From: Selaginella moellendorffii
Lineage: Eukaryota > Plantae > Lycopodiophyta
Assembly: GCF_000143415.4 (NCBI RefSeq)
Contig: NW_003314347.1
Span: forward strand, 271,438 to 335,437
Direction: 5' to 3'
DNA length: 64,000 bases
Below, piece by piece: positions 10,837 to 52,645 of this stretch. The notes below the pieces were generated by a model. The model saw nothing but the letters and a program-made list of their open reading frames with translations. It did no database searches and was not told the origin of the DNA. The translations under genes and the position numbers were made by a program. Every line of letters starts with the position of its first letter. Position 1 is the first letter of the stretch.

Positions 10837-12788
10837 GCACCCTTTAGAGCCATGTAGTTAGTGTCTTCGTAGAGTGAATTCAAATCACCTTCCAAGTGTT
10901 GTTTCCTGCACGAAGCAGCAAAGCTCATTCGTCCCAGCGCAGTAGGCTCGAATGGCATGCTCTCCATCAACTCCAGAGCCTCCTCCAGCCTTCCAGATCG
11001 ACCGAGAAGATCGACCAGGCAGTCATAGTGCTCTCGGCAGACAGGAAATCCAGGTACTTCTGCGGTCACGAACACGAACAAGCGTCTTCCGAAGTCCAAC
11101 AGACCTCCATGGCTGCACGAAGTGAGAACGTTCACTAGAGTGACCGAGCTTGGATCCAAGCCTTCGAGCAACATACACTGGAAGAGTTGAGCCGATCTCT
11201 CGCCGAGCCCGTTCCAAGCGTATCCAGACACTATGGTGCTCCAAGTTATCAAGTCTCTTCTCCGCATGCTTTGGAACACACCAAGTGCTTCCTCGACTGC
11301 TCCACACCTACTGTAGAAGTTGATCAGTGCGTTACAGATGACAAGGATTCCCGGAAAGTACCCGAGCTGGAGTATCCTTTCGTGGATCGCCCGTCCATCT
11401 CCGAGAGCCGCGGCTTCGGCACACGAATCTATCATGGTGGCGTAAGTCACGTAAGTTGGTCTGGTTCCTTCTAGCTGCATTCTTCTAAACAGCACGAAAC
11501 TTTCCTTCGTTCCAGCTGCAGCGAAGATCATAGCGTTCCAGGAAACGATGTCGTGGAAAGGCATGCTCTCGAACCAGTCCCGAGCAGAGCTATTGTCACC
11601 ACTTCGAGAAATGGCCACCAGCATCGCCGTGGAGCAAGCCAGTGTGTGAAGAGGCATCCGGCGGAAAAATTCTCTGGTACTCGTGACATCACCTCTTCGG
11701 CCGTAACTCGTGATCAAAGTGTTCCAGGAAACCGCGTCCCTTCGTAGATTGGTGTGAAAGATCTTCGCGGTGGAGGGCAAGTCGTCAGCTTCCGAGTAAA
11801 GACGAGCCATGGCATTGCACGAAAAGCCATCCCACTGCGGCATTCTGGAGAAGATACGCTCGGCAGGCTCTAAAGTTTGGAGGTGGTCACTGTTCTTGGA
11901 GAAGGCCGCTAGAACCGACGTCCAGGATGCGATGTTCCTCTCGGGCATGGAATCGAGTAGCTCCATCGCTTGGACACCGTCTGCAGTGGCACCGAGCCTC
12001 AGATTGAAAGAGACCAAGTTCCTCTCGGGCATCTTCTCGAAGATGGTCGCCACGGTTTCTTCGCGGCCCCCGGCTCTGGCGAAGGCTTGCATGGCCGAGT
12101 TGAGAGACACGATGCTACGCTCGGACATCGCCAAGAACAAGCTCCACGAACTCTGGAAGTGCCCGTGCTGGGCATAAGCGCTCACCATCTCCGTCCACGA
12201 GACGATACATCGCTGTGGAAGTTTTTCGAAGAGCTCTTCCAGATCTTCTAGCTGTTGCTGCTCTCCATCGCCAGTAGCGAGCATGGAGTTCCAGGAGAGA
12301 AGGTTTCTCCGCGGCATTGTATCAAACGTGTTCTTCGCGTCAATGTAGTAGCCATTCGAGGCAAGGCCTGCGAGAAGAGTGTTCCACGACACAAGATCTC
12401 TCTCGGGCATTCGCTGGAAGAGATCTCTGGCCTCTGGAATAGCGCAGGATCGAGCATAAGCAGCGAGTACGATATTGTGGCTCACCGTGTCAAATTCGGG
12501 GAGGATCTCCAGCATCGTCCTCGCGAAATCCAGATGCCCTCGCTGCGCAAATGCCGAGAGAAGGATGTTCCAGGAGAAGACATTGCGCGAGGAAATCCTG
12601 GAGAACGCATCGACTGCCTCGTCCAGGCTCCCGCAATCTCCATACATCCTCACGAGCGAATTCTCCAGTACCGTTGAGCGGTAGCCAGCGCCGAGAATCT
12701 GGCTGTGGAGCTGCCTGCCACGAGCTAGATCGCGTGAAATCCCACATTCCCGGAGCAGCACGGCGATCGTCGAGGATCCATTGCTCAT
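10833..12788 (-). CDS. PLS-class pentatricopeptide repeat protein (partial E domain, no DYW), intronless
   Basis: ~650-aa ORF of PPR repeats (MPERDLVSWN.., YSRCGAVEEA.., HYDCLVDLLGRSGRLEEA..MPFEP). First ATG at 12788. Confidence 0.92.
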   Translation of the reverse strand: MSNGSSTIAVLLRECGISRDLARGRQLHSQILGAGYRSTVLENSLVRMYGDCGSLDEAVDAFSRISSRNVFSWNILLSAFAQRGHLDFARTMLEILPEFDTVSHNIVLAAYARSCAIPEARDLFQRMPERDLVSWNTLLAGLASNGYYIDAKNTFDTMPRRNLLSWNSMLATGDGEQQQLEDLEELFEKLPQRCIVSWTEMVSAYAQHGHFQSSWSLFLAMSERSIVSLNSAMQAFARAGGREETVATIFEKMPERNLVSFNLRLGATADGVQAMELLDSMPERNIASWTSVLAAFSKNSDHLQTLEPAERIFSRMPQWDGFSCNAMARLYSEADDLPSTAKIFHTNLRRDAVSWNTLITSYGRRGDVTSTREFFRRMPLHTLACSTAMLVAISRSGDNSSARDWFESMPFHDIVSWNAMIFAAAGTKESFVLFRRMQLEGTRPTYVTYATMIDSCAEAAALGDGRAIHERILQLGYFPGILVICNALINFYSRCGAVEEALGVFQSMRRRDLITWSTIVSGYAWNGLGERSAQLFQCMLLEGLDPSSVTLVNVLTSCSHGGLLDFGRRLFVFVTAEVPGFPVCREHYDCLVDLLGRSGRLEEALELMESMPFEPTALGRMSFAASCRKQHLEGDLNSLYEDTNYMALKGA

Positions 12789-12841
12789 CAATCATCCTTT
12801 CCAAGAGCCCTAAAATCAAGAACCCTAATTTCTCCCTCGCG
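12789..12841. promoter_or_regulatory. 53-bp divergent intergenic region with a telo-box-like motif
   Basis: ATGs at 12788 (-) and 12842 (+). AACCCTAA at ~12821. Confidence 0.5.
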
Positions 12842-14779
12842 ATGGAAGGCCAGTTCTTTGGAGGCGCGGGGATGCAGCAGCAGCAGCAATTCGTGGCACC
12901 GCCGCAGCAATCCCCAGTCGCAGCGCAGCAGCCGTTTGGATCGCTTCCAGCGCCACCGCATTTCCAATACGGGTACGTCTCGCAGCAGCCGTTTCCTCCC
13001 TACATTGCCACCGCCGCGGCGGCGCCTCCTCCTCCGCCGCCTCCTCCTCCTCCGATCGCTCACAACAGCTTCTTCAATCCCTGGGAGATGCCGCCAACGC
13101 CCGTTCCTCCACCGCAGGACTCCGAGCTCCACAAGCGCATCGACAAGCTTGTGGAGTTCTATGTCAAGAACGGTCCCGGCTTTGAGGCACTGATGAAAGA
13201 GAAGCAAAAGGAGAATCCAGACTACGCGTTCTTGTTTGGAGCCGATGGCCATAGCTACTACCAGTACAAGCTCTGGATCACGATCAACCCCCACCTCGTG
13301 GCTTTCAATCCAGCTCTCAACATGGTGAACCAGGCTATAGGAGTTTCTGCTGGGATCACTCCACCGCCTCCGCCACCTCCGCCACCACCATCGGCGGCGG
13401 CGGCTGCGAGTTCCTTCCCAGCGTTTTTTGATCTGGCCGCCGCCGCTGCTGCCGCTTCTGCTCCGCCGGTCATGCATCACCCCCAGCAGCAGTTTTTCGA
13501 TCCAGCATTGGCTACTGCTGCTACGCAGATCATCAGCTCGGAGATGGTGGCGGAGTTGCATGGTTTGCTGGATAACTTGTCCGGGACTAAAGAGGCTATC
13601 AAGAACGCTAGGAACTGGTTTGTGCAAAGGTCGACTTTTGCTCCCACGCTGGTGGAAGTTCTTCGAGATAGAGTGACTAAATCCGATGGTAACGTTGACA
13701 GCCAGATGAACATCTTGTACCTTGTCAACGACATTCTCTTCAGCAGGTACAAAGCTCTCTTTTTTTTTCTTTCCCTTTCTTCTTTTGGTTGATAATCGCG
13801 ATTCTTTTCTCACAGCTTGCAGTCTCGACTCAACACCAAAGAGCTCGACGGCGTAGCACTGGCTTTTCGTCCTGTTTTAAGCTCCATCCTGGTGGCAATC
13901 TACCAAAATCCTCGGGTGAATGACGCCGAACGCGAACAGGTGGAGAAGATGCTACAGTTTTGGCGTACCAAGGAGGTTTACGATCCAGATACTGTTTATT
14001 CTCTCGACAAAGAGATGAGATTTGACTCAAGTAAGTTTGCTGGTTTTTCGTTTTCGTGGAGCTAAAATGTATCTTCGATACTTGCAGCAGCTGGTGGACG
14101 ATACGGAGAGAAAACATTGCCGCCGCCAGAACCAGAGAGGGATGAGGATCATCAGCTACAGTCGAGTGCTGCCAGCTTTCCAGCTCCTCCACAAAGCCCT
14201 TCAGTTGCTTCGCTCTTTCCAGCCTTGGCTCCGTTTCTTGCTGCACAAGCTCCAAGTACACAGACGCAACAGCCAGCAGGCCGGGCAGAGCAAGCTCCGT
14301 ATCCGTTTTTTCCACCGGGACTAATTCCAGGCATGGTCCGAAAGATGCAAATCGGAAGCGGCGTTCCATACTCCCCTCTCAGCCCGCTGGACATCCCGAC
14401 AATCATACCGTCATCCGCGACGTCGGAGTCACACATCATGGACCGAGTTTCGAAGTTTTTCAAGGAGATCGGAGAGCCTGATCCTCTAGCCGGGAAGTAT
14501 AAGCCGTCCGGGGACTCGGACGACGAGGGAGGAGGCAGCGGTGGTGCTCGAATTCCTCCACCGCCTCAGATGCAACAAGTCGATCCACAGACTGGAACTT
14601 TGCCGGATGGAAGTCTGGAACACAGACCGGGAATGACATCCACCGGAAGGTTGGGACTCGGGGCAGCCGCGGATCCAAACGAGGCCACGCAGTATGATGA
14701 TGTCTACACGTCGTACAGGAAGCAGCGGAGCACAAACTACCATACCTCTCTGAGTGCGAGAGCAGCGGCAGCACGATAA
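12842..14779 (+). CDS. SURP/SWAP- and CID-domain protein (CHERP-like RNA-processing factor), 3 exons
   Basis: SURP: [47 protein letters not shown]: [26 protein letters not shown]-terminal [17 protein letters not shown]. Confidence 0.88.
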
Positions 14780-25415: not shown

Positions 25416-25942
25416 CTAGTGCTCGTCCACCACGTTTACCAGCTCGTACTCCACCAGGGAGAGATTGTTGTCCTCCTTGACCACAAAGTCCGCCGGATCC
25501 GTCACCTCTATCCTCCCCCACTTGTCCACCGCCAAGCGCATCGATCCCTTGAACATGTCGATCTTCGCGTTGCGGATGATAATCGTCGTGCCTTCTTTCA
25601 CTTGATCCACTGGAGAAGAACACAAGCAAAAAAGTTCTCAGTAAGATCACAGCCAAAATCCATCCAAACCACAAAAGATCTCAGTCAAGCAAAGAATCCG
25701 AAAGAGAGGAGATCCAAAAGGGTCTTACCTTGCTCGTTTCTTGCGGCGAAAACGATCACTCCGGTCTCGTCCCCGACGATACACTCGGCGATTCGCATTT
25801 GGCGGACCTGGCTACCATCGGGGCGAGGCTTCTGGAGGACGAGCTTGGAGCTCAAGACCTTGACGACGAGGGTATGGCCGTTGGTGCCGGGCCGCAGCTG
25901 ATCTACCTTGCCAAACACCGGCTTGCGCAGCGGCTCCGCCAT
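25416..25942 (-). CDS. Small OB-fold nucleic-acid-binding protein (At4g28440-like), 2 exons
   Basis: LRKPVFGKVDQLRPGTNGH..IAECIVGDETG..RNEQ|VDQVKEGTTIIIRNAKIDMFKGSMRLAVDKWGRIE..NNLSLVEYELV. Confidence 0.92.
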
Positions 25943-26147
25943 CGCCTCTCGCGCCTCCGATCCAAGGATCAAGATCACAAAACCAAAAAGGAGAGACGAT
26001 CGAACCTCTCACGACACCGCCCTTCTCGCTCGAAAGAGGAAAAAAAAAAACAACCACGAAAACCTAGCGCCCGGGAATATTCCTTCCAAAAAACGTCCTT
26101 GTGAGGGATATTCTGCTGGCGTAACGCCCCCGGCGGGATATTCCGCC

Positions 26148-27926
26148 ATGCTGGACGCCGTGTATGACCGCAACCGGTTGATCCGGGCGCTGGGAATCGG
26201 CGGCCGCGTCGACCATGCGCGCCACGTGTTCGATGGGATCGCGCGCAAGGACGCGTACTCGTGGGTGAATATGCTCTGCGCATATGCCCAGAATGGGTAT
26301 CTGGAGGAGTCCAAGAGGCTCTTTGATTCCATGCCGGAGCACAATGTGGTGACGTGGACGGCAATGGTGTCGGCGTACGGCAGGCACGGAAATGTGGTCC
26401 AAGCCAAAGACGTGTTTGATTCCATGCCGGAGAGGAATCTTCTCTCGTGGACGGCCATGGTGGTGGCATATGCCCAGAGCGGGCATATTCCCGCAGCACA
26501 ACTCGTGTTTGATTCCATGCCCGAGCGGAATTTGGTATCTTGGTCTGCCATGTTGGATGCATATTCGCAGGCAGGAGACTGCGTTCGGGCAAAGATCCTC
26601 TTTGATAGAATGAAGGAGAGGAATCTCTATGGATGGACTTCCCTTGTGTCGGCATATGCCAAGGCCGGACGTACGGAAGAGGCACTACGAATATTCCTGA
26701 AGATGCCGGAGTGGAGCCCTGTCTCATGCAATGCTATGATCGCTGCCTTCTCCGTGAACGGCCAGTTAAGCCAAGCAAAGGATCTCTTTGATAGAATGGC
26801 AGAATGGGACGTTTCATCGCTAAACGTTATGCTTTCGGCATATGCCCAAAGTAGTCATCTGGAAGATGCTCTGGTATTTTACGAGAAAATGCCATTGCGC
26901 AACAATGTTGCAGACACCGCAATGTTGGGAGTCTACGGAAAAGTAGGAAAGATTGAGGAGGCCGAAAGGATATTTTACGCAATGGAGCGTCACGATGTAA
27001 TCGCGTGGACGGCCATGATAACAGCATATGCCGAGAACGAGCATCTTGTTATGGCGAAGAAAGTATTTGATTCCATGAAAGAGAGAAACTTGATTTCTTG
27101 GAATGCTATCCTCGCTGCGTTTGTTCACTCCAAAGACATTGATCAAGCCAAATATTTGTTTGATCAAATGCAAGAATGGGACATAGTATCGTATACTCTG
27201 ATGCTCCACGCATATGCCCAACTTGGGCATCTTGACTTCGCCCAGGAGATCTTCCACTCGATGCCTCACCGCGACATCGTCTCCACCTCGGCCATGATCC
27301 ACGCTCTCTCTCGCAATGGCGAGCTCCAAAAAGCTCGCTCCATGTTTGATTCAATGCCTGACAAGAGCTACGTCGCATGGAGCTCGATCCTCTCCGCCTA
27401 CGCTCAAAACGGCCACACCCGCGAAGCCAAGCTCCTCTTCGACCGGATGTTCCACAGGGACGCGCTGGCCGCGAACTCAATCCTCGCGGCACTCGCCCAA
27501 AACGCCGATCCCGAGCTCGCGATCCAGTTCTTCCAGATCGCCATCGCCTGCGACGAGATCCTGCCGAGCCCGGTATCCTTTTGCTCCATCCTCGTCGCGC
27601 TTAGCCATGCCGGCGACGTCGATCGCGGGGTTGCGTGCTTCGCGTCCATGGTCGTGGATTTTGGCTTGGCAGCGATCAAGCAGCACTACAGCGCCATGAT
27701 CGATCTGCTGGGACGAGCGGGATACTTGGTCGAGGCGGAGGAGCTCATCACCTCCATGCCATTCGTCGGCGATGCTAGCGATTGGAAATCCTTGCTGGGA
27801 GCTTGCTCCAGCTTCACGGATCCTCGCCGGGGGGCTGTGGCGACGAGGCGCGCAGTTGGATTGGAACCCACAAGCGCGGCACCTTACGTTGTTCTTGCCA
27901 ATATAACCAGCACACGAAGAGCTTAG
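26148..27926 (+). CDS. PLS-class PPR protein (E domain, no DYW), intronless
   Basis: Tandem S-type repeats (FDSMPERNLLSWTAMVVAYAQSG..) and HYSAMIDLLGRAGYL..WKSLLGAC..EP..AAPYVVLANI. First ATG at 26148. Confidence 0.92.
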   Translation: MLDAVYDRNRLIRALGIGGRVDHARHVFDGIARKDAYSWVNMLCAYAQNGYLEESKRLFDSMPEHNVVTWTAMVSAYGRHGNVVQAKDVFDSMPERNLLSWTAMVVAYAQSGHIPAAQLVFDSMPERNLVSWSAMLDAYSQAGDCVRAKILFDRMKERNLYGWTSLVSAYAKAGRTEEALRIFLKMPEWSPVSCNAMIAAFSVNGQLSQAKDLFDRMAEWDVSSLNVMLSAYAQSSHLEDALVFYEKMPLRNNVADTAMLGVYGKVGKIEEAERIFYAMERHDVIAWTAMITAYAENEHLVMAKKVFDSMKERNLISWNAILAAFVHSKDIDQAKYLFDQMQEWDIVSYTLMLHAYAQLGHLDFAQEIFHSMPHRDIVSTSAMIHALSRNGELQKARSMFDSMPDKSYVAWSSILSAYAQNGHTREAKLLFDRMFHRDALAANSILAALAQNADPELAIQFFQIAIACDEILPSPVSFCSILVALSHAGDVDRGVACFASMVVDFGLAAIKQHYSAMIDLLGRAGYLVEAEELITSMPFVGDASDWKSLLGACSSFTDPRRGAVATRRAVGLEPTSAAPYVVLANITSTRRA

Positions 27927-35499: not shown

Positions 35500-38400
35500 C
35501 TATTAGGGTTCTTTTGTAGATGGGCCGGGATTTGGAGGAATGTTAGAAGGAGGCATCGGCGGATCTGTAGACAGTATTAACTACTCTTGATCCCTTTGTA
35601 TGAAGTGTTTCAACCGTTACACATGCACAATCTCCGGAGGATCGGCCTGTTGAACGTCATGCTAAACCTCATAAACTTGCGGTCCAACTTGCCGCAACAC
35701 CCAATATGGTCCTTTCCACTGCGCAAGGAGCCCCTTAGATAAACCACATACCGTAAGATGGGGAAAACGGACTAATACCAAATCATCCACTTTATACTTT
35801 GCAGGTGGACGATGATAGGAGTTGTAGCACCGTTGTTGTCCCATTTGTATGCGGCCTAAGTGTTCGGCAGACTCTGCTCGGACAAGTGGAAGAATGCTCG
35901 TCAAATATTGATCCCATGACCTAACTTCAGGAGCTCGTGGCAATCGCAAAGGTAAACTGGTAATATTGGATCATGACCATATAAAAGTTTATATAGTGAA
36001 GCACCAACAGAACTCTGCACCCCTGTGACATAGGCATACCGAAGAGACGGCAAATAACCATCCCAATTCGAATTCTGAAAGTTCACATACTTCGCAATCA
36101 TCCCTTTGAATGTCTGAATGAGCCGTTCCACCAGACCCTTTGATTGTGGATGATAAGCACTCGTAAAAGTGTGGCGTATCCCCAACCGAGACATCAAAAC
36201 ATGAAATATCTTAGCCATAAATGCAGGACCATTATCCAAAAGAATCCGCTCTGGACAAGAATGCTGGAACACCACTCGATTGAGGAGGAAGTATTCAACA
36301 TCAGTTGCAGAGGCGCTAGCAAGAGCACCAACTTCCACCCAACGAGTCAAGTAGTCAGAAGCAATAATAACATACTCATTGTCAGCAGTCGACCGTGGAA
36401 AAGGTCCCATAAGATCAAACACCACCAACTCAAACGGATGGGAAATTGCAATTGATTCCAACCATCCTTCTGCAGCACAAGGGGGAGTATTACGAGCTTG
36501 GCACCAAACGCAGCTACACACATACCGGATAACATCACGTCGCATCTCCGGCCAATAGAAAGACCTGCGCAGCTTCTTGGTCACACGACGATGTCCCATA
36601 TGCCCATCTAGAATAGGAGAATCATGGTAGGCATGGAAAAACCGTGGAATAAAAATAGAAGGCACCACCAGCCATAAAGGATCATCAAGATCTGTCCCCA
36701 CAAAATAAAGGAGGCCATCTTCAAGATGATATTGAGAATGTAAATGCCGAAAAAGCAAGTTATCAGCAAGTGATGCAGGATTCTCAAATGCATCTCAAAG
36801 CCTTCGAATCCACGGCTCAATCTTTTGAGCCTCACGAACTTCATCAAGAGAAGGTAGATCTTGCTCTGCACCTTGTGGACACTGAACATCAAGTACAGCA
36901 ACCGCCGATGGCACAGAATCCTCGTCTAGAAAATCCACAGATGCTGGAACAATAGGCTTATCAGAAACATGAGAAGAGAGCAGAGAAGGAAGAGGAGCTC
37001 AATAAAGGGCATCAGCATCAACCATAGAACTCCCTGGGCGATGAACAACATCAAAATTATATATCTAAAACTTCAAAGCCCACCGAGCAGTACGACCAAC
37101 CAGGTTCTTCCGCTTCAATAATGAAGTAACGGCAGCATGGTCACCTTCAAGTAACATCCGAGAACCATGTAGATATGCATGAAGTTTCTCGAAACCCCAA
37201 ACTGCCACTAAACATTCCTTCTCTGTCGTGGAGTAGTTCACTTCTGCTGGTTGTAACGTACAGCTTATATATGCAATGGGATGACGTTGACCAGGCACAC
37301 TCAGGCTTTCTTGCATCAACACACCTCCGAGACCAATATTAGAAGCATCTACGTGCAAAATAAAAGGTCGAGTGTAGTCCAAAACCGGAAGAGTTGTTAA
37401 TAGCTCTTTGAGATTCACAAACGCTTGCTCACAATCTGAAGACCAGATGAAAAATGACGTTGATGACTTTAGCAACGCTCGCAATGGTGCAATGCGATTA
37501 GAAAGATGATCCACAAAACGACCAAGATACTGCACCTTGCCCAAGAAGCACTACACATCATTCACACACTTCGGAGTAGGGAACTTTAAAATGGCTATAA
37601 GTTTGTCAGGATCAACTTGCAAACCTTCACGAGAAATACGGTACCCAAGATAAGTTGTGTCCTTGGATCCAAACACGCACTTCGACCACTTCAGCTTTAA
37701 AACAACGTCCTGTAGCCAATCCAACACTTTACACACATCACGAATGTGCTCCTCCCACGTCCCCTCCGAGTGAATCAAGACATCATCAATGAAGTCAGTA
37801 GTCACCTCTGGCATATCACAAAGAACCTCGTCCATCATCCGCTGGAAAGTTGCTAGAGCATTGTTCAAACCAAACGGCATAACTAAGAACTCGTACAAAC
37901 CAAATGGTGTACGAAAAGCAGTCTTAGGAATATCTTCTTCGGCCATCAATACTTGCCAGTACCCAAAAGCAAGATTAAGCTTGGTGAACCAATGACTTCG
38001 CCCTAGACGATCTAAGAGATCAGCCGTGTGAGGAAGAGGGTACACATCCGGGATCGTCACTTCATTTAACGGACGATAGTCAATGCAAAAACGAATACTC
38101 CCATCAGGCTTCGTCACAAGATGAGGTTCACATGCCCAAGGACTCTGCGACTTTTGAATAACACCCTTCTCCAACATTTCCATGACGTTTGCACGTAAAA
38201 TTTTGATCTCCTTGGGTGATCGACGACGAACAGGAACCTTGATTGGACGAGCATCCCTGGTTGGAATCAGATGACGTGTGGCAATCTTGGCCCCAGAAGA
38301 TAGGTCAAATTCAAAGAGATCAAAATACTCCTTCATGAGCCGATCAACAGCTGCAACACAAAGATCTTCGGAGGGATCGGAAAAGGGAAGAGCAAAACAA

Positions 38401-38823
38401 GATGGAAACATAGGAGGAAATAGTGGGGAAACAAAAGTAATAGAAGCAGAGGTAGAAGTAAAGGGACGAAGAGGTACGGAAGTGAGAGGAATGGATGAAA
38501 CATAAGGAAGTATGAGACAAGGGGGAGAAACCTCAAAGTCACACTTGGCATGATTGTGCTGCAACCAATTCATACTAAGAATGAGGTCAAAAGCTTGACT
38601 TGGCACCACCCGCAACGACTGCAACTCAAGCTCGAGATCGCCCACACGCACAACCAGGTCCGCCTCATCTCGTGCATATGCATGTGTACGGCCATTGCCA
38701 TAAAGAATGAAAATTGGATCCGCCGCACGACGCAAGTGTAGACAACAATGTGTGGCAACAGGTCGAGCAATAGAAGATAAACTCGAACTTGTATCAACTA
38801 ACACGGAGAGAAGAATAAAAGAC
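35500..38823 (-). pseudogene. pol (PR-RT-RH-INT) of outer Gypsy element
   Basis: ORFs 37551-38855, 37065-37544, 35901-36758 and 35662-35949, separated by stops or frameshifts. Confidence 0.9.
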
Positions 38824-38828
38824 CTCTT

Positions 38829-39972
38829 TGTAGGCCACAAATTTTTCATTTCCAATTTGCCAGCTTACCTCGTCTATCCGACCAACACTGCCTTGGCTCG
38901 TGCTAAGTTCCCTTACCAAGGTTCTCGCTTATTGTACCAGCTCCTACTTGGTCCTACTTGGTTTCAGCTACTCACTGCACAAGCACCGGAGTGTTAGCCA
39001 TCCATCTACGGATTCCCAAATCTCTCCCAATCCCCCTCCCCGGGTTAGACTAGACTTAAGGTTCGGCTACACTCCCCGCAGGCACAAGCAGCCAAGCACA
39101 CCAATCCTCCAGGTTCCTAACACCCCTTGGTACAACAAGACTTGATCATGGGACCCTCTAAATCCCAAGCCTTGGGTGCAGCACTTGCTTCGGGACGTCA
39201 GGGTGAAACACCGTGGCCTAACGGCCCGGTATGGGTACCTCTACCCCCCCACTTCCATCTCGAAGGAAGGCCCAAGGCTCTAGGAAGGGCGAGGACCAAT
39301 GAGCCGCATGGTACTCAAGTGGGGCATTACTCCACATGAGCCGGGAGCACCGCAATCGATTTCCCTTTCGGGAGTGGGAGCTGCTCTTGAGCACTTCCTT
39401 GGATGGCCCCTCCGGCACCAACCAAGTCCATACTCACTCCCACCCAAGGCCCCTCGGTCCCAATCTCAACCTCAAGTCGGTTTGGAAGCCCCACTAGAGA
39501 GTCCCTTCAAAACTGGTTCCTGGACCTCACTATCCCTACTATACTTTTGGAACCCCCTGCAGCCCCCCCCCTGGGAGACACATGCTTTGGGCTTTCACCC
39601 CTTGACCCGTATTAGTATTTGGACTTAGTCTCTGGCTCGATCTCGGACTCGATTTCGGATCCGACTTTGGATTCGGTCTCGGACTCGATCTCGGACTCGA
39701 TCTTGGACACGATCTCGGACCCAACCTCGGACTCGGTCTCGGACTCGGTCTCAAACCCGATTTCAGATCTCGGACTCGGTCTCGAACTCGGTCTCGAACT
39801 CGGTCCCCGAGTCGGCCTCGGACTCGATTCCGGACTCTATCTCAAACTCGGTCTCCGAGTTGGTCTTGGACTCGATCTTCGACTTGGTCCCATCCGATGA
39901 ACTCTTTGTCATTTTGGTCATGCTTTCGGGGTTCCTTTAGCCTACGACACCTCGGCGAGTTGGTTCCTTACA
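38829..39972 (-). repeat. 3' LTR of nested chromovirus (1144 bp)
   Basis: TGTAGG..CTTACA, direct repeat of 45181-46312. Confidence 0.95.
39630..39895. repeat. Degenerate 6/12-bp tandem array (TCGGAC/TCGATC/TCGGTC) inside LTR; second copy ~45985-46235
   Basis: Read directly. The two LTRs differ in length by 12 bp. Confidence 0.9.
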
Positions 39973-40758
39973 ACTCCACCACCCATAGAAGAAGTTCGAT
40001 GCCTATATCGAACGTCTCTCTTTTGATCCTACGATTTGCTGACCATGTCTCTGGGGGCATCCCCCCACTTAGCGGTATGCCTAAGTTAGTCTCCCCGGCC
40101 AAGAGCCCATGACAACGGAATATAGGTGGCCCTATACTCCTCACCTCACCATGCCCTAGTATAGGGTCGGGACTTGAACCCAGCCTTGCTTTACTAGGGG
40201 GTTGGGACTCGAACCCAACCTCCGTAGAATACGTCTACGGATTCGACATCCCCGCAGGGAGTCGGGCGTAGCTCCCTATGCCTAGTCGACCTAGCTAACC
40301 CATGCTAATTAGCTTACCTTTGGCGTGCCTTCGGGTCCCAACATATGCCATTGCTCAACTTCACAAATTGATACTTTAATTGAACTTTGCATAAGTACAT
40401 AGAGTTCTGCTTTGTAGAAATGCCTCCACTAGATCTCGCGCGTTCACTAAGTTCTCCTTCGGTTCCCATGTTGCTTCGCAGTGTGGAAATCCTTTTCACT
40501 TCACATGGAACTCTCTCACCTCGTGTTCTTGTCGCTTGCTCTTGCGCGCATTGAGGATGGCCTCGACTTTGTATTCCTTTTCCCCTTGGATAACCTCAGG
40601 TAAAGGTCTTACTTGGTCCTTGCGAAGCGGATCCTCAAAATACGGCTTGAAGTAAGTTCACGTGGAACATGGGATGCATCTTCCCCATCTCTCGAGGAAG
40701 TTGGAGTCGGTAAGCCACTTTACCGATTCGAGCCTCAATCTCGTAAGGCCCCGCAAAC

Positions 40759-40810
40759 CTGCTTAAGGAACTCAAGATCAATTCATTTACAGGAATACAT
40801 GCATTTTTAC
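40759..40810 (-). other. Putative 52-nt spliceosomal intron 2 in the integrase GPY/F region
   Basis: CCCAAAG|GTAAAA..TTCCTTAAGCAG|GTTTGCGGGGCCTTAC. Removal gives KLTQ-R-FAGPYEIEARIGKVAYRLQLP. Confidence 0.85.
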
Positions 40811-41228
40811 CTTTGGGTCAACTTCCAACTGATCCCACTTGGTAGCCTAAGGTTCTTGGTGTTTAGCCACACCTTCTCCCCAGCTTGGAACTCTACGTCC
40901 CGGTGCTTCTGGTTCGCATACTTTGTTTGCCTTTGTTGAGCTCGTTCCAAGGAATCCCTCACTAGATTCCAAATGTTGAGTCTTTCCGCCATGAATGCCT
41001 CCACTGCGGGTAACTCTCCATGATACTCGGTCACGCCGAGTTCCACAGGACTTTCAATAACTCGCCCATTGATGACTTCCCATGGACTCACCCCGATACT
41101 CGAATGTGGTGAGTTGTTATAACACATTTCCGCAAGTCCCAAATGACTTACCCAATCGGTCTGGTCTCCCGTGACATAGCATCGCAAATAATCCTCCAAC
41201 TACCTATTCACCCTTTCCGTTTGTCCGT

Positions 41229-41275
41229 CTGTCAAGAAGTGTTAGTGCCACCAAACTTGACTTAATACCCCATAC
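41229..41275 (-). other. Putative 47-nt spliceosomal intron 1 in the integrase catalytic core
   Basis: CAAACAG|GTATGG..CACTAAC..TTCTTGACAG|ACGGACAAACGGAA. Removal gives HPQT-D-GQTERVN. Confidence 0.85.
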
Positions 41276-44200
41276 CTGTTTGTGGGTGATAAGCTGTGCT
41301 GAATTTCAACTTGGTGCGATACTGTTTCAGGAGAGTCCTCCAAAACCTACTAGTGAAGATCTTATTTCGATCTGAGATGATCTCCTCCGGCCTTCCCTGT
41401 ACTCGAACCACTTGTTCGAAAAACAGCTTCGCCACACCTTCCATATCCATTTCCATTGTGGTGGGTATGAAATGTGCCATTTTCGAAAATCGGTCCACCA
41501 CCACGAATATCGCATCAAACCCCTCACTTGGGGGAAGTCCCGTGATGAAGTTCATCGTAAGACATTTCTACGGACGATCGGGAATTGGGATGCTTTGCAA
41601 CAAGCCCCCACTAGCCTTAGTCACGGCTTTGACCTGCTGACATGTTGGACATGTCTTTAGTCTTGGACGTCCTTAGCCATATCTAGCTAATGGTACTTCC
41701 TCTTGAGTAAACCCATCGTCTTGGGCACTCCGCCGTGTCCTGCAAGAGGTCCGTCATGACACTCTTCTAAGGCTACCTTCCTTAGTTCCCCTTCTGGAAC
41801 ATACACCCTCGTTTGCTATAATAGATGAGTCCGTTGCATTTCGCATAGCCCGTTTTTTCTTCCGTTGGCAGCTCACCTCTCTAGTGAGCTTCCCGTGCCT
41901 CTAGATTCTTCAGTAACACTTCTTGTGCTAGACCATCGTTCTCATATGCTATCCGCACATCGTCCCAGAAGGTTGCTGTTGCGCTGGATATCGCCAACCT
42001 CAAGCTCGCTTTTCGACTTAGCGCATCCGCCACGATGTTGCTCTTCCCAGGCTTGTACAGAATTTCGCAATCAAACTCGGCCAAGGCATTGGCCCACCAA
42101 CTTTGTTTCCCTCTCAGGTCGGGTTGTGACAAGAAGTGTTTCATTGCCACATTGTCTGTGTAAACCTTGAAGTGTCTCCTAAGGTAGTGTCGCCATTCCT
42201 TGAGCGCCTTGACCACCGTAAACAATTCCTTCTCGTGGGCAGGCCACTTCCATTGAGCCTTGTCCAACTTCTTCGAGAAGAATGTTACTGGGTGATTGTC
42301 TTGCTTCAAAATTGCGCCCAACGCAAAGTTTGAAGCATCTGTTTCTACTTCAAAGTCCTTACCAAAGTTTGGTAATGCCAACACAGGAGCCTTCCTCAAC
42401 TTCCCTTTGAGGTGGACGAATGCCACCTCGCATTCCGTTGTCCATACCATCTTCCCTTTTCCTGTTTGGTCCGTTAAAGGCAAGGCTACTCTCGAATAGT
42501 GTCTGATAAACTTTCGGTAGTAGTTGCATAGCCCCAAGAACGCCCTCAACTCATGTACATTCGATGGTCACTCCCATTCCTAGATCGCTTAGACCTTCTC
42601 CGAGTCCACCTTGAGCCCGTCCTAGCCCACCACATACCCGAGAAACTTTACCTCTTATTGAGCAAAGTCACATTTGCTCTCTTTAGCATACAGTTTTTGT
42701 TCCCTTAGTTTCTCAAACACCTTCCCCAAGTGTTCGGCATGCTCCTCTAGCGTCTCGTTATAGATCAGGATGTCATCAATATAGATGACCACGAAGTGAT
42801 CCAGATAGGGTACAAAGATGTGGTTCATCAACGCCGAAAACGTTGCCGACGCATTGCACAGCCCAAAAGGCATCACCAGAAACTCAAAGCTCCCATACCT
42901 CGTTCGACAGGTTGTCTTCTCAACATCTTCCTCAGCTACCCTGATCTGGTAGTATCCTAACCTTAGGTCAATCCTTGAGAAGTATTTTGCCTTTCCCAAC
43001 CTATCGAACAGGTCCTCAATCCTTGGCAAAGGGTATTTGTTCTTCTTGGTATACTTGTTGAGCAACCGGTAGTCTATGCACATGCGTATAGATCCATCTT
43101 TCTTTTTCACAAATAGCACTGGCGCCCCATATAGCGACTTGCTCAACCTAACATACCCTTTGTCCACCAACTCCTTTAGTTGGCGCTTGAGCTCTGCAAG
43201 TTCTTTTTCGTTCAATCGATAGGGTGGACGAACCACCGCCTCAGCTCGATCTTATGTTCTATCGGTCGTGCGGGGGGCAACCCCGTCGGTAGCTCCTCCG
43301 GCATGGTATCCTGGAATTGGTCCAACACTCGCTGGATCATTAAAGGTACTTCTTCCGTTCCAGTCTTTTTGTCACTTCTCACCAAGAGTAAGCACAAAAA
43401 TGCAGCCTTGGTCCCTTTAGTGAGTTGTCCTCTTGTGGACACCAGGTTCAGGCACGAATCTTTGGCCTTGCATTGCCCTACCTTTAGATCTTGGGCCTCC
43501 ACCCTGGATTTTCTTCCTTGGGCATTTGTCAATACCACAAGGTTCCTACCTTGTCCATGTAGGGCTACCACGAACCAATTGAACTAATCCATCCCGAAGA
43601 TCACGTCAAATCCCGCCATGTCCAACACGGTGAAGTCCATGTCTACTTTCCAAGTTCCTACTTCGACTCTCGCTTGTCAAAGTACCTCATTGGTGCTTTG
43701 GCTACCTTGAACAAACTCTATAGTCCTTGGTTCGCTTAGCCGCTGCACCGTTAGTCCGGCTTGCCGGATTATGTCTGCAGCCACAAAATTATTCGAAGCA
43801 CCCTTATCAATAAGGATCTTAACAAAGCTACCTCCGAGCTTCCCTCGGAGGGCTAGTAGATGTCGCGAATGACTCTTTACCAAAGTTACTCGTGTAATGA
43901 GTAACTTTGAGTTAGGGACTGGATCATATACCTCAGTTTGGACTTCACCCGACTTGATGGCCATATTGGCTCTGGCCTTCTTCGGGTAGGGACATTCCCT
44001 CGAAAAGTGTCCCGCTTCACCGCAGTTGTAGCATACGTTGTTTCCCATGCTGCTATATGACTTGACCTTCTTATCCGTGGGTTTGTCTCTTTTCGCTTGA
44101 CTCCCCCACGTACTCGCTCGCTGGCCACCGGATTTGCCTTTTCGGAACCCCAAGGACTCATTCTTAGAGAAACTCTTCTTGAATTTCCCCCTGCTATACG

Positions 44201-45180
44201 TTCCCCTTAGTTTGGCCCCTTTGCTAAATGTGAATCCCGACCCCGTTGTGTTCCCCTTTCGTAGGTTATCGTTGAAATGCACCTTGATGGCCGCATCCAA
44301 TGCTTCCTTGTAGTTGGTCGGGTTCCACTGCATCACCTCACCGCGAGCCCAGGTTTGCAAACCTGATATGAAGGCATGGAACGCATCCATATCCCCCATG
44401 TTCGTGACCAGTATCATCTTTGCCATGAACCCATTCACATATTCTTGGATGGTTCCAATCTGTTTCAGCCTACTCAGCTCATCTCTCAGATGCAGAGTGG
44501 CATTCAAAGGAACGTATGTTGTGCGGATCCTCGCCTTCATCATGTCCCAAGTGGCCACCGGTCCTTCGTTGGCCTCTGTTGTTCTCCACCAAGACTTGGC
44601 ATTATCTGCCAAGTATGGTTTTGCACATGGGACCTTCTCCGAGCTCAGTAATCGCAACACTCAGAAATAGTCCTCCATATCGTAAAACCAATCCTCCACC
44701 ACCTTATAGTCATTCACTCCCTTGAAGACCGGTGGGGGCTTTGGTTTGTACTTGGGAACTGCCTGAGGGACTGATTCTACTTCAGTCTGTTTGGTTCTAC
44801 CTCAATCCCTGCCGAAGGGTCTGCACCTTCTACGCTACTAGCATCCGCAGTCTTTCTCTTTTTCTTCCGCTTCTCGTCACGCTTTAGCTTGCGTATGAGA
44901 GTCTCCAGTAGGGCATTGGTCTGTGCCAACTGTCCTTCTAGCACGTCCAATCGAGCCTTGGACGACCGAACCTTGCCACCGGACTCCTGTTTGGAAGTTT
45001 CCTCACTAGAGACCTCCTCATGCAAGGATTCCTCATCCATAGCCTCTCGTTCAACTGGAGGCTCCAGCTCTGGAGGAGGTTCCGTCTCCGCCTTGGTTCG
45101 CTTTCGCCCTACCTTTGCCATCTCCCAGCAATCCGCCTCTATCCTTCGCTAAAACTGAGGAAAAGGCTCTGATAACAAAT

Positions 45181-46312
45181 TGTAAGCCACAAATTTTTCC
45201 TTTCCAATTTGCCAGCTTACCTCGTCTATCCGACCAACACTGCCTTGGCTCGTGCTAAGTTCCCTTACCAAGGTTCTCGCCTATTGTACCAGCTCCTACT
45301 TGGTCCTACTTGGTTTTAGTTACTCACTACACGAGCACCGGAGTGTTAGCCATCCATCTACGGATTCCCAAATCTCTCCCAATCCCCCTCCCTAGGTTAA
45401 ACTGGACTTAAGGTTCGGCTACACTCCCCACAGGCACAAGCAGCTAAGCACACCAATCCTCCAGGTTTCTAACACCCCTTGGTACAACAAGACTTGATCA
45501 TGGGACCCTCTAAATCCCAAGCCTTGGGTGCAGCACTTGCTTCGAGATGTTAGGGTGAAACACCGTGGCCTAACGGCCCGGTATGGGTACCTCTACCCCC
45601 CCACTTCCATCCCGAAGGAAGGCCCAAGCCCTTAGGAAGGGTGAGGACCAATGAGCCGCATGGTACTCAAGTGGGGCACCACTCCACATGAGCCGGGAGC
45701 ACCGCAATTGGTTTCCCTTTCGGGAGTGGGAGCTGCTCTTGAGCACTTCCTTGGATGGCCCCTCCGGCACCAACCAAGTCCATACTCACTCCCACCCAAG
45801 GCCCCTCGGTCCCAGTCTCAACCTCAAGTCGGTTTGGAAGCCCCACTGGAGAGTCCCTTCAAAACTGGTTCCTAGACCTCACTATCCCTACTATACTTTT
45901 GGAACCCCTTGCAGCCCCCGCCCTGGGAGATGCACGCTTTGGGCTTTCACCCCTTGACCCGTATTAGTATTTGGACTTAGTCTCTGGCTCGATCTCGGAC
46001 TCGATTTCGGATCCGACTTCGGATTCGGTCTCAGACTCGATCTCGGACTCGATCTTGGACCCGATCTCGGACCCGACCTCGGACTTGACCTCGGACTCGG
46101 TCTCAGACCCGATTTCGGATCTCGGACTCCGTCTCGAACTCGGTCCCCGAGTCGGCCTCGGACTCGATTCCGGACTCTATTTCGAACTCGGTCTTCGAGT
46201 CGGTCTTGGACTCGATTTTCGACTTGGTCCCATCCGATGAACTCTTTGTCATTTTGGTCATGCTTTCGGGGTTCCTTTAGCCTACAACACCTCGGCGAGT
46301 TGGTTCCTTACA
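45181..46312 (-). repeat. 5' LTR of nested chromovirus (1132 bp)
   Basis: TGTAAG..CTTACA, adjacent to the PBS on the minus strand. Confidence 0.95.
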
Positions 46313-46317
46313 CTCTT

Positions 46318-47294
46318 GTTATAAAAACGAGCTTGGAAAGTAAACACTGGATGAACCGGTGCCGAGTGAACCCCTTGATGATACTCTTGAAAGAAAGATG
46401 GAGGGATCACTAACTTATTCGCGCAAGGTCCCTCTGTTACTTGCGCGACTCCTCGTTTCCCAGATGCACCTTGGTGTCCAAACCTTCCACCGCAGCAGCA
46501 CCAACAGGACATTATTGACGCCAAGGTCTCCATCCAGGAAATGGAGGTCGCCAATCCGGAAAGCGTCGACAACACCGATAAGTATGACCAACTTCATCAC
46601 ATGCCCAGCAATGAACATCACAGCCACGACCACGTCCGCGCCCTTGTCCGTGGACTCGAGTAGCAACAGCATCAACCTCTATTGGAACAAGACCATCACT
46701 CATAGGAAGTGGAGCTGAAGGACGTGCAGCAAGAAGTGGAAGAAGCGACGTCTCATAACATTATGCCAAGCGAAGAGCATCGTCAAGGGTGGCAGGAGCA
46801 AGTGCATGCACAAGGCTGACAAGATCTTGACAAAGTGCTGGCCACAACATTCCTAACTTGATCCGCTCTGACATATTAGGCTCCATATAAAGCAAAAGAC
46901 TTCGGAAACAAATGCCAAATTGCATCACCGACTCAGATGGCCCTTGGCTAAGACGATGCAATTGTTGGAAGGCATCGTCACAATCGTTGGTATGTCCGAA
47001 GGCGTGTTTGAAGACGTCCGGAAGAACACTACAATCCCCACGAGTGGCCGCACTCAATCCATTGTACCACTGCAATGCCGTCCCTTGAAGACACGTGGGA
47101 AACTCATGCAAACATGGAGCATCATCCCAAGAATGATATGTGGGAATCACCGTGAAGTGATCGAACCAATGGTACACATCATCCCTAAGATTCCCACGAA
47201 AGAACTCTGGCCGAACGCGAAAATCGGCACCAAGAGCAGGAGGAGTTGGACCATGTGCTGTGAATGCCGCCATCAATTGAGTTTGGTTGTTCAA
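46318..47294 (-). pseudogene. gag of outer Gypsy element
   Basis: PEFFRG..DVYHWFDHF..CLQGTALQWY..LSQGPSESVMQF; zinc knuckle CWACDEVGHTYRCC. Confidence 0.85.
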
Positions 47295-47610
47295 TTGTTC
47301 AATTGCAAGCGCATAGCATCAAGCAATTGAACCAACTGATGCTCTAGAGTCAAAGGAGGAGATTGCGGATTGGCCATGAAGATGAACGAAAAAGAAAGAG
47401 CAAAAAAAGAGAAATGACAAAAAGCTAGAAAGAAATGGTAAATCTAAACAATGCAAAAAGCTGGATCTAAACCAAAATCCTGAAAGGAAAGAATAAAAGA
47501 AAGGAAATAGAAAAAGCTAGATCTAGATGATGCAAAAGCTAGATCTAAACCGAAATCCCAAATCCAAGCACTCCCCAAGGACAATCAAAAGTGCCCCTCA
47601 CCTCCACCAA

Positions 47611-47785: not shown

Positions 47786-50700
47786 GGATATAGATTTCAT
47801 ATGGCATTTTTAGTAAAATTTTAAAATATTCTAGAATAAATTATATCATAGTTAAGAGCAAAAAATTTAAAAATTGTATTAAAATTAAAAAGCTATAGTA
47901 AAAAAATAAATATACTAAACTTAGATATAGTTTATTTATGTAATATTTTTATAATTTTTTTTGTTATTTTAGCAAAATGGTCATCTTTTTAGAAAGTTAT
48001 AAAAGCTTTTTAAGGAACAATATTAGTGTGGATGTTAACATTCAAAACAACAAAACTTTACTTAAGACTGCAAAAAACTTGAAAAAAAATTTAATATAAT
48101 ATTTATATTAACACCTAGAAATATTGTATAGTTTCCCACAAATAAATATCTTATGAAGGTTTATATCAATTTGTGCAACGCTCTCTTTTAACATTTCAAC
48201 TACATCTATCATACTATGTTGCAACATGTTAAAATTTAAATATTTCCTGTGTAATCATAATTTTTCCATAAAGTTAAAATATAAAAAATTAGTAAAAAAA
48301 GAATATACATTTTTCTTACAACTTCTGTTTTTGTCCTTTTATGTTTAATGTTGTTATTTTTTATTATGAAAGTCTTGAAATTATCATTTTGATATTTTCT
48401 TTAAACAAAATTTAACAAATTGATCCACCATTGTTGATATATGTATAAGTTTGTTTTGATACCCACTATAATTATATTTTTGTAATATTTTATTTTATTT
48501 TTAGTTTTTTATAATAAATTTATTAGGATGTGTTATTAGAAATCCAACATTCTTTGCCATCAACGAAAAATTCAAAAACAAATTAAAAATTTAAATTAAT
48601 ATTATGAAAATTTAAAAAATCCTTAATGTATTATATATAATGGGAATATATAATATATGTTAATTTTATTTCTAGTTATTCTTTATAACAAAATTTTTTT
48701 ATATGTGTATGGAAGTATAACATTTCTTGCTATTAATGAAAAGTTCAAAAATAAAAAACAACAAAGGTAAAATAAACATATGATGTTAAAATTTAAAATT
48801 TTAATAATGTAATATATATAGTAAAAAATTGTAATATATGTTGATTTTATTTTTATTTCTTATTTATAAGAAATTTGTTATAATGTGTTGTAGGAAATAC
48901 AACATTATTTGTTATAAAAAAAAACTTCAAGTATAAAACATAACAAAGCAAGAAGATATATGATATTAAAATTGAAAAATTTAATAATGCAACTAACGGC
49001 ATATACTGACACTCAGGTTGGTTAGTAATGTCTTGTTGCCTACTGAATTAATGACTTTCTCTAAGATAACACAATAGAGTTGCTAATAACAGAAGCTTGA
49101 AAAAGCCTTGCAAAAGTAAGATAAAATGAAAACATGTGTAACTCTCTTAACTTGTTTACTATGTAGAAATGTGGTGCTAACAAAATCTTTAAAGAAGAAA
49201 CCCCAAGAAGAAAATACGAAATAGGAAGATTGTAAGCTTCTAAATTTAAACTTTTTTGGCACCCTACCCCTTGAGTCGAGCCTAGCGGGAGCAAATTAGA
49301 TCTGCTACTTGTCAATCAATATACAATGTGATTCCTATAATCAACCAATAGAGTCAGACCAAAGACTTCTCTAATACTAAATGTAAACTCCTAAATTTGA
49401 AATTTCCAGAACAAAGGGGGTGCACTCTCGCTCATAGTTACTTTCCTTTTATATTTGAACCCTTATGGATCATCTTTTGAGTTGTTCATTTTGGTTGCTT
49501 ATAAAGATGGAAAGCATAGAGAGGCAGAAGCTCTAGAACAAAAACTTGGAAAACTTATATTAAAGAATGATGAAAACAAAAGGCCGAAAAAGGACAAAAG
49601 CATATAAATTTGTAAACTATATACTATCACTCAGGTTGGTTGCCAATATCTTGTTGCTTTCTTCACTAATAACTTTCTCTAGGATGAGGGAATAGTGCTG
49701 CAAAAAATAGAAGAATACAAAATAAAGTTGGAAGAAGGTTTGTGAAAGTAAAATGAAATGAAAATATGTGTAGACCTCTTAATTTTTTTTGCTATGTAGA
49801 AATGTGACACTAATAAAATCTTTGGAGAAGAAACTCTAAGAGGAAAAAAAGAAATAAGAAGATGCAAAATGTAAAGAGATAAAGGCCTTGGAACAAAAAA
49901 TTAAAGAACTTACGCTGGCAATCAATAAGGAAAAAAACTTCTCCGTTTACCTCAAAAAGGTTTATAAGAGTGATTGAAAAACATTGTTAACTTTGGAATT
50001 TACAAAAGTTAAAGTTAATACGTCAAAAAATTAATGAAATACTCAATTCTCAAAGCCAAACAAAGAACCATGGCACTTTAAAGTTTAATTCTTTTTTTCA
50101 TTCCATATTATTTTCTAATAACGCCATCACGTTACAAGCCCAAGATCTTTGCAGAGCCTAGCAGATTCACCAGAGAAGATTTTTTTGGTGTACCAACGTT
50201 AGTGTTTACAATGTAAAATTTAAAAAGGTGAAGGCTCAGTTCGAATACGATATAAATATAATTCTTAAAGTTCTTGTTAGTTTATAAAACTCTCTTTAAA
50301 TAAACACAAACAATTTTAGCATTACATTTATCAAACTAGGCTTTTTTGGTCTACTGATACTAATTGAAGGAAATGATTTAAAAGTGAGTTGGTAAATACT
50401 ATTTCATTTTGTGGTTTTTCACTGATTTTTTTCATAATTGTTTTCTACATCAAGTTTAGTAGGCTGTGTTGTGGGAGACACAATATTACTTATTGCAGAC
50501 CAAAAATTCACAATCGAAAACAACAAAAACAAGATCTATAGAGATTAGAAAAATCAACGGTGCTAAATATTTAGTAGGAACAAGTTATAAATGCATGTTT
50601 AAAATGTTTTATAAACTTTGTTTTTCTATAGGAAATATCAAAAAAATTTAGTGCATTTATAACAAAATGCAAAAAGCAAACTTTTAAAATATTTTCGACA

Positions 50701-51360
50701 TTGTTATCTTGGCAAAAGACATAATAACAAATAATGGTTTGATATAAATATAGTTCTCATAAATTATTATGGTAAACCTTTTTATTGTGTTTTATTTTAT
50801 CATTGTTAATATTTCTTTTGACATCTTTTTAACCTGCAAGAAAAATCCATAGTTGTACCTTATAAAAGAAGATAAAATAAAGGCATAACAAGTATCAAAA
50901 CAAACTTATAGGCAATGATAAATAAGTTTATTAGAATTTGTTTAGAAAAAAAATTGATATAGTAGCTTCAAGACTTCCAACAACAACCAAAGGACAGAAA
51001 AAAAAGTTGTAAAAAAAGTGTGTGTCTGACAGGTAAAAATTTCAAAGTTGTTCTTTTTTACTAATTTTACATTTTTGCTTTGTGAAAAAACTATACTTGT
51101 TTGGGAAATATCAAGTTTTTAATATCTTTCAACAAGCTATGATAGGTGTGGTTGAAGTGAAAATATCAATTTTTTAACATCCTCCAACAAGCTACAATAG
51201 GTGAAATTAAAGCATTAAAGGGGAATGGAGGGAAAATCAATATATGAATTTTTTAACCTTCATAAAATAAGTGTTTGTAGAGAACTATGCCTATTTTGCC
51301 AAGTGCTAATAAATGGTATATTGTTTTTTTGTTTCAATTTCTTCAGTGCTTTTTTACAGG
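47786..51360. repeat. AT-rich degenerate repeat block with internal tandem (~180 bp at 48540-48990), dispersed (49000/49630) and inverted (~48065-48480 vs ~50880-51360) copies
   Basis: For example, ATAAGTTTGTTTTGATAC (~48445) is the exact reverse complement of GTATCAAAACAAACTTAT (~50892), and CACTCAGGTTGGTT occurs twice. Confidence 0.65.
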
Positions 51361-52645
51361 GATCAGATGTACAAGTTCAAAACTTTGTGACAAAGTTGGG
51401 GTACTGGAAAGAGTCAATGAATTCACTAGAACAAACAGTAGCAAGCTTTGGAATGTAGGAGAACTGGACAGTATACAAAGAGGTACCATGCAATCGTATC
51501 CACACCTGAGAACTTTCTCAGTTAGTGCTCACTCTCAAATGATGAGCTTTTACCTCTTCGTAAGGTTGAACATGGTTGAACGCTGAGCTCGTCCAGAAAG
51601 TGGAAAACTGTAAGCAGGATTTTTCCGGCTCAGAGCTTCTGCTTCTTCAAACGTCCATGTTCGAGTTCACCTCCAAGGCCCTCCACCACGTCTGCTTTCC
51701 TCCACAGGCTTCCTCAACGTGGCCTTGCACCAGGTCTGGCGGGATCTCCAAGAATTCCAGCTCCAGCTGTAGCTATGCTCAGAGCATGCTGACTAGACTT
51801 GTTGCTGAACTACCCTCGCAGTATTATCCAGCAGGATTGGTCAGAGTTGCTCCCCGATGCGACTGCCTGCTACAGTGCTATATGGGCGCGGCAGCTGATC
51901 CTGTGGAGCAAAGCACAATTTCCAGCAGATGGGAATCGTGGAGACAGAAGGTCCAGCAGGACGAAAACGTTGGTGGAACCGAGCGCTACACCTCTTTTTT
52001 CTTCCGCTCATTCTTCTTCGACAAGGAGTGACGAGGCAACACCAGGAGTGACAGCAGCTCTCGACACTGGAGCAGGAGGTCCACCACGATCGTCACTGGA
52101 GATGAGGTACAGTGCTGTAATCTAGGTTGGAGCTTATATGTTTCTTGCTTTCCTGCTAGATGCAAGACTAACGATCCAATCCTCATCGTCGAAGCAAGCT
52201 TAAACAAGGGATGGTTCAAAATGGTACTTCAAGCAGGTGATATGCCGACGACGATGGTGCTCTTGCAGCTCAGGTGGCCATCCTTCAACATGGCAGAGAC
52301 ATATCCAAAGGGAATACTCGTGGTATCAAGAATTCGATTCATGGTTTCGAGATAGGTCCTCACGCTGAGATCTACTATGCTAACCATGATGGAAGCTTGT
52401 GCACGGGGGGTTTGAGTCAGCAGGATGAAGTCTACCTTTCACGAATGGCTTAAGGCCGACAAGCTCCAGATTCTCCGGCTCTCAATAATTCACTACAACA
52501 TGTGCTTTTTCCAGAGTCTAGAGTTACTCCAGCCGCGATCGAGGAGAGGGGAGTGCTCGGGGGTTGCCACGATCTTGAGGAATGAAAAGTAATCCAATCT
52601 TGAACAAGTCTAGATCCTTTTTTTTCGAGCATGTAAACGACTTAC

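Follow-up and report, generated by a model that had tools for sequence, protein, structure and literature searches.

An LTR retrotransposon of 7484 bp occupies positions 38829..46312 on the minus strand of the window, the 64-kb stretch of Selaginella moellendorffii DNA analysed here, and all of its features are given on that strand unless stated otherwise. Self-BLAST located the LTR pair, i.e. a 5' LTR of 1132 bp (45181..46312) and a 3' LTR of 1144 bp (38829..39972), both with TG..CA termini, and the sequence AAGAG stands on either side of the element as a perfect target site duplication of 5 bp, at 46313..46317 (upstream copy) and 38824..38828 (downstream copy). Sequence reading also places a 13-nt primer binding site of the tRNA-Met type, TGTTATCAGAGCC, at 45165..45177 and a polypurine tract, GGGTGGTGGAG, at 39974..39984. 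The LTRs, both priming sites and the perfect duplication had been listed in the initial annotation of this locus, and all are present. At 12 of 13 positions the primer binding site agrees with what we take to be the usual plant initiator tRNA-Met site. In both LTRs, about 20 degenerate copies of a 12-nt unit, CTCGATCTCGGA, are repeated in tandem (39636-39878 and 45988-46216), and the 3' LTR additionally holds a run of nine C residues (plus strand, 39563-39571), the counterpart of a variable poly-G tract described in the literature.

Between the LTRs, Pfam profiles follow one another in the order Retrotrans_gag, zf-CCHC, RVT_1, RT_RNaseH, rve, SH3_Tf2-1 and Chromo; a match to the aspartyl protease profile, just downstream of the zinc knuckle, is weak. 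The element is thus a Ty3/gypsy chromovirus, with gag, protease (PR), reverse transcriptase (RT), RNase H and an integrase (IN) that ends in a C-terminal chromodomain. It is nested in a different Ty3/gypsy element, likewise on the minus strand (35901-38828 and 46313-47330), the gag of which lies upstream and the protease, RT and integrase of which lie downstream of the inserted copy. Host-type genes are found near the repeats at 8009-9517 (-), 10833-12791 (-), 12551-13792 (+) and 25908-27926 (+), and their products are a CCCH zinc-finger protein, two PPR proteins with long uninterrupted ORFs, and a protein with Surp and CID domains. A further ORF at 3659-4327 (-) with a hAT-family dimerisation domain is probably the remnant of a hAT DNA transposon, and the region 48001-52000, just past the nested elements, is very AT-rich (GC 0.255 at 48-50 kb).

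The copy is dead, a point absent from the initial annotation: about 14 stops lie in frame, and at least five indels break the frame. Over 1145 columns, the two LTRs share 94.6% identity and differ by 45 transitions and 5 transversions (K2P = 0.046), a divergence corresponding to roughly 2 to 5 million years under generic, i.e. not species-specific, plant substitution rates. A total of 5251 bases of the internal region was compared against four sequencing runs, namely X1 (DNA), X18 and X20 (both labelled 'RNA?', a guess, as they may be DNA) and X21 (raw reads, the sole certain RNA run). Against contigs of other family members, the window copy shows deletions of 13 nt (at 43241) and 10 nt (at 44787), together with further small indels at 41818, 41657 and 40650, and its remaining frame changes are therefore attributed to these indels, not to introns. 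One intron candidate was rejected on this ground, a 24-nt segment at the gag frame change near 44790, where X18 reveals the 10-nt deletion; the frame change near 43241 is likewise explained by the 13-nt deletion. Compared with the family majority in X1, the differences of the window copy are overwhelmingly transitions, and on the plus strand it has T for C at 125 places and A for G at 91 places. Such an excess would be expected if methylated cytosines had been deaminated in a silenced copy.

Two frame interruptions in the integrase are of another kind. Exon 1 (41277..41663), with both catalytic Asp residues, matches Pfam rve (E=1.1e-11), ends in HPQT and is followed by intron I1, 47 nt, phase 1 (41229..41275; CAG/GTATGG...CACTAAC...GACAG/AC). 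Exon 2 (40811..41228; DGQTE...KLTQ), delimited by colinearity with relatives, is followed by intron I2, 52 nt, phase 2 (40759..40810; AAG/GTAAAA...TAAGCAG/GT), and exon 3 (40379..40758) encodes the SH3-like C-terminal domain of the integrase and the chromodomain (SH3_Tf2-1, E=1.3e-14; Chromo, E=3.1e-6). I1 lies four codons ahead of the catalytic Glu, splits an Asp codon (G/AC) and has the branch-point-like motif CACTAAC 12 nt ahead of its acceptor AG, and I2 lies just ahead of the GPY motif and splits an Arg codon (AG/G). Both are non-coding, and the stops inside them truncate the integrase unless they are spliced out. The initial annotation had proposed exactly these two inserts with full splice signals, and the coordinates, the signals and the early stops of the unspliced frames (HPQTGMGY-stop at I1 and KLTQR-stop at I2) were all reproduced on re-examination and frame translation. 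Lesions of the window copy are present in the flanking exons as well: exon 2 has a single copy-specific TAG at 41202..41200, where the majority letter of X1 at 41202 gives CAG, and exon 3 has one frameshift near 40650 and one TGA.

To examine the boundaries, the exon pieces were aligned one by one with 10 related integrases that have no interruption, taken from a representative search, with stops inside single exon pieces read as X. In all 10 relatives, the end of exon 1 (residue n) and the start of exon 2 (n+2) leave room for exactly one residue, that of the split Asp codon, and exon 2 is separated from the start of exon 3 by one residue only (Arg). With I1 removed, the catalytic Glu follows the second catalytic Asp at a distance of 31 + 1 + 3 = 35 residues, i.e. 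that of the DD35E triad. Excision thus restores HPQT-D-GQTE and KLTQ-R-FAGPY, as had been predicted from the sequence, and the exact colinearity together with the regained spacing argues that the inserts are not chance indels.

As for the origin of the two segments, comparison of I1 and I2 with the rest of the 64-kb window returned chance matches of 11 to 13 nt only, and there is therefore no sign that either derives from a repeat or a nearby host intron. We take a fungus-like distribution of intron lengths in S. moellendorffii to mean short introns. The distribution reported for this species clusters with most fungi, unlike other land plants. Searches for counterparts elsewhere were negative within their reach: a word-based protein search with exon 2 gave no candidate, an exhaustive representative search with the same exon gave 6466 relatives, none above 47% identity, and an exact DNA pattern across I1 had 0 matches in metagenome contigs. 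A protein-guided metagenome scan recovered distant relatives only (41 to 59% identity over short segments).

In its overall architecture the element fits SM1-Galahad of S. moellendorffii (Novikov et al. 2012, PMC3350952), an assignment based on the published description of the family, in which membership is defined by at least 50% LTR nucleotide identity to the exemplar, and not on its sequence. SM1-Galahad is described as about 7.5 kb long with LTRs of 1076/1146 bp, TG..CA ends, a 13-bp tRNA-Met primer binding site and an LTR poly-G tract of 11 to 25; the window copy is alike in length (7484 bp), LTRs (1132/1144 bp), TG..CA ends, 13-nt primer binding site and possession of a G-run, although its run of 9 is shorter than the published range. 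The published reconstruction drew on several copies, with 'no intact copy' reported, and comprises a 3885-bp ORF that ends in core integrase, followed by a pair of short ORFs, the second of which holds a group I chromodomain (PMC3350952). Here, the frame that opens with the ATG at 45121 and closes with the stop at 41262, within I1, measures 3860 nt, to which 23 nt lost in the window copy are to be added, a close fit to the published ORF, and exons 2 and 3 with the chromodomain then follow. The introns account for a published puzzle, that of a family which lacks any intact copy and carries its chromodomain on a separate ORF; 'intron' and 'splic' have 0 occurrences in that paper.

Interruption of the integrase appears to be confined to this family. 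The sister family SM2-Galahad, with hundreds of copies in the same genome, has a single Gag-Pol ORF of 4731 bp (PMC3350952), a related pol of 1298 residues at another locus (L012) is uninterrupted at both intron positions, and the gypsy element that hosts the insertion provides a control within the window, as its integrase reads continuously across both positions (YHPQSKGLVER and LLAQWKGPY). Since the ORF or integrase of all three is unbroken, we consider the introns specific to SM1-Galahad.

Direct support for removal of the inserts comes from run X18, where a contig of 2500 nt (record 9) extends over 43023..40429 and is missing exactly 47 nt at I1 and exactly 52 nt at I2. Of the two cuts, that at I2 coincides with the GT..AG cut, with a sliding ambiguity of 2 nt due to GT on both sides. 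That at I1 was aligned 5 nt upstream, a placement equivalent to cutting at GT..AG provided that the contig reads G instead of A at 41280 (CAA to CAG, synonymous). The mapping of splice junctions that the initial annotation had called for thus yielded the exact 47- and 52-nt absences in a presumed RNA assembly, and the raw-read RNA run X21 contributed 11 reads and no joints. So few reads indicate very low expression in that sample and make X21 uninformative either way. Together with the matching ORF breaks in the published family, the X18 contig supports I1 and I2 as real spliceosomal introns of SM1-Galahad and not lesions of the window copy.

The same comparison uncovered two further splices upstream, and the set of introns initially described was therefore incomplete. 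The first is an alternative intron of 157 nt, intron P (43775..43931; GAG/GTATAT...TGCAG/A), supported by X18 record 10, which joins 43774 to 43932. Its donor lies 19 codons past the zinc knuckle, and if retained, it is coding and contains the protease catalytic motif. Removal shifts the frame, which then reads GAG/ACA TAA and stops one codon after Gag, as checked on the window copy. An alternative intron at the end of gag with a stop just past the junction is what characterizes Gag-only splicing of the Copia/BARE1/EVADE type, and the 157-nt splice is of this type. The second, leader intron L (45155..45220; GAG/GTAAGC...CCTCAG/T), is a candidate of 66 nt that begins in the LTR, taking up its final 40 nt, and encloses the entire primer binding site. 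In X18 record 11, the match ends at 45156 and continues into an overhang of 110 nt, the printed 30 nt of which match 45251..45222. On the basis of this one contig, we tentatively propose a leader intron whose excision would take away the end of U5 together with the primer binding site. All four intron segments have AG/GTA...CAG/ ends, as expected of U2-type spliceosomal introns, and their GC content is 0.33 to 0.43 compared with 0.49 for the internal region.

In X18, the integrase cuts and the 157-nt cut sit on separate short contigs (records 9 and 10) and are hence unphased. In X20, a contig of 614 nt (record 13; 40806-41414) retains all of I1 and extends some 5 nt into I2, and another (record 18) ends at 43774 in an unmatched stretch of 30 letters, suggestive of removal of the 157-nt segment. 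Splice combinations thus seem to vary between the two presumed RNA assemblies. A fully spliced RNA would encode Gag only, with the integrase exons in its 3' untranslated part. Because the 157-nt splice ends the frame after Gag, production of a complete integrase requires that the protease segment is kept while I1 and I2 are removed.

This arrangement lends itself to a different explanation, in which SM1-Galahad is non-autonomous for integration, the two inserts are old lesions of a master copy that are spliced by chance, integrase is borrowed from an intact relative such as SM2-Galahad, and the product of the spliced integrase exons would serve no function. The intact single Gag-Pol ORF and the hundreds of copies of SM2-Galahad in the same genome would supply a donor, no intact copy of SM1-Galahad was found by the authors of PMC3350952, and the stop after Gag in fully spliced RNA points in the same direction. 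However, both inserts have complete, matching splice signals and are excised exactly, exons 2 and 3 still clearly score as integrase C-terminal domain and chromodomain despite decay, and it is improbable that two chance lesions would both restore the frame on removal. We therefore regard borrowing of integrase as unlikely, albeit as the strongest of the competing explanations.

A second objection concerns the nature of the runs, as the intron-less contigs may be DNA, i.e. processed genomic copies that record old splicing and not present-day expression. X18 and X20 are indeed labelled as RNA by guess only, and X21, the certain RNA run, shows nearly no expression. Against this stands the DNA run X1, in which the element is represented by 51,486 contig pieces at very high depth: no skip of 47, 52 or 157 nt is present among the 15 best-supported joints listed, depth does not clearly fall in either of the two bins containing the introns, and record 3, among the contigs listed, crosses I1 with the intron kept. 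X18, on the other hand, has all four segments removed, and its size (25.8 million letters, longest record 16 kb) resembles that of a transcript assembly. Genomic copies are thus a still less probable source of these contigs, and such copies could in any case arise only via splicing. Finally, the view that the inserts are indels of the window copy alone, or resemble introns by chance, takes its appeal from the other indels of this copy (13, 10 and 1 nt), but is refuted, since those indels have no splice signals and differ from the family, contigs from other copies carry both inserts, the published family reconstruction (PMC3350952) has the same ORF breaks, and the exons are exactly colinear with 10 relatives.

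We consider it likely that the locus holds a decayed, nested copy of a high-copy chromovirus family with four spliceosomal introns, the spliced RNAs of which serve as messengers, and propose that SM1-Galahad operates as follows. The unspliced RNA would be the only template that can be reverse transcribed, and would itself encode Gag, PR, RT and RNase H along with an integrase that has neither catalytic Glu nor C-terminal domain and chromodomain. One spliced messenger, with the protease segment removed, would yield Gag alone; another, spliced at I1 and I2 but retaining the protease segment, would yield the complete integrase with its chromodomain, which would then act in trans on cDNA copied from the unspliced RNA. 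The persistence of the introns would follow from the role of the unspliced RNA as the replicative template. Leader-spliced RNA, if this splice is real, would have no primer binding site and could not start reverse transcription, and would in this way be filtered from the replication cycle.

We infer from this arrangement that integrase may be gated by splicing, as the initial annotation had suggested. The part of that proposal which concerns real, family-wide introns is upheld by the X18 cuts and the published ORF breaks, and an actual switch for integration, with trans-preference and evasion of NMD, may be envisaged as an extension of it. A stricter version of the model is somewhat less likely than not: by way of four host-type introns, SM1-Galahad RNA would exist in two obligate pools, one unspliced, copyable and unable to encode a complete integrase, the other spliced, devoid of the primer binding site, hence never copied, and the sole source of excess Gag and of complete integrase with its chromodomain, with integration being trans-complemented within the family. 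If true, the intron covering the primer binding site would represent a built-in filter against intron-less copies.

Introns should be purged from LTR retrotransposons, as RNA that has been spliced can be reverse transcribed into a new DNA copy, and the classic demonstration of Ty transposition via RNA is said to have relied on just such intron loss. That a family of hundreds of copies retains four introns, including two within an essential enzyme, raises the question of how a retroelement excludes spliced RNA from its replication cycle. There is also a practical consequence, as annotation pipelines that score LTR elements by uninterrupted ORFs would call such families dead. According to a 2025 review, plant LTR retrotransposons are generally intron-less, with Ogre and EVADE as notable exceptions, and in the literature we found no description of mini-introns that cut the integrase core and the GPY region, of a Gag-only splice in a chromovirus, or of a leader intron over the primer binding site.

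Parts of this arrangement have precedents in known systems. In the legume Ty3/gypsy element Ogre (Steinbauerova et al. 2008, as cited in PMC12786077 and PMC3735527), splicing occurs between ORFs and genomic copies retain the intron. To the extent that these citing texts describe it, Ogre resembles SM1-Galahad in being a plant Ty3/gypsy element with an intron in the coding region, a functional one in the case of Ogre, but has one intron, located between ORFs upstream of RT, compared with two mini-introns in the integrase and two further splices in SM1-Galahad; the lineages also differ, SM1-Galahad being a chromovirus of a lycophyte. The initial annotation held that known plant cases control the balance of Gag and Pol. 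A pol intron that has to be spliced out is already known from Ogre, and the Gag-only splice has counterparts in BARE1 and EVADE.

For the 157-nt splice, the closest parallels are BARE1, EVADE and Drosophila copia, which make a Gag-only subgenomic RNA via splicing (PMC3735527, PMC5580714). As in SM1-Galahad, a small alternative intron begins at the end of gag, protease sequence is removed with it, the frame shifts and an early stop ensues; in BARE1, 104 nt are removed and the stop follows after 3 codons, as compared to 157 nt and 1 codon here. These are, however, Ty1/copia elements without integrase introns, and an Arabidopsis paper treats the strategy as a Ty1/Copia feature, which our data would extend to a Ty3/gypsy chromovirus. 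The division between an unspliced genome and a spliced messenger, with intron-containing RNA being exported and used, would be shared with retroviral splicing and with the env/accessory splicing of the Cer1/gypsy type (PMC10309623). Splicing in those elements opens a downstream gene, whereas in SM1-Galahad it repairs the gene of a truncated enzyme, and loss of the leader intron appears to take the primer binding site with it. The conceptual precedents are thus Ogre for the coding-region intron, and BARE1, EVADE and copia for the Gag-only splice.
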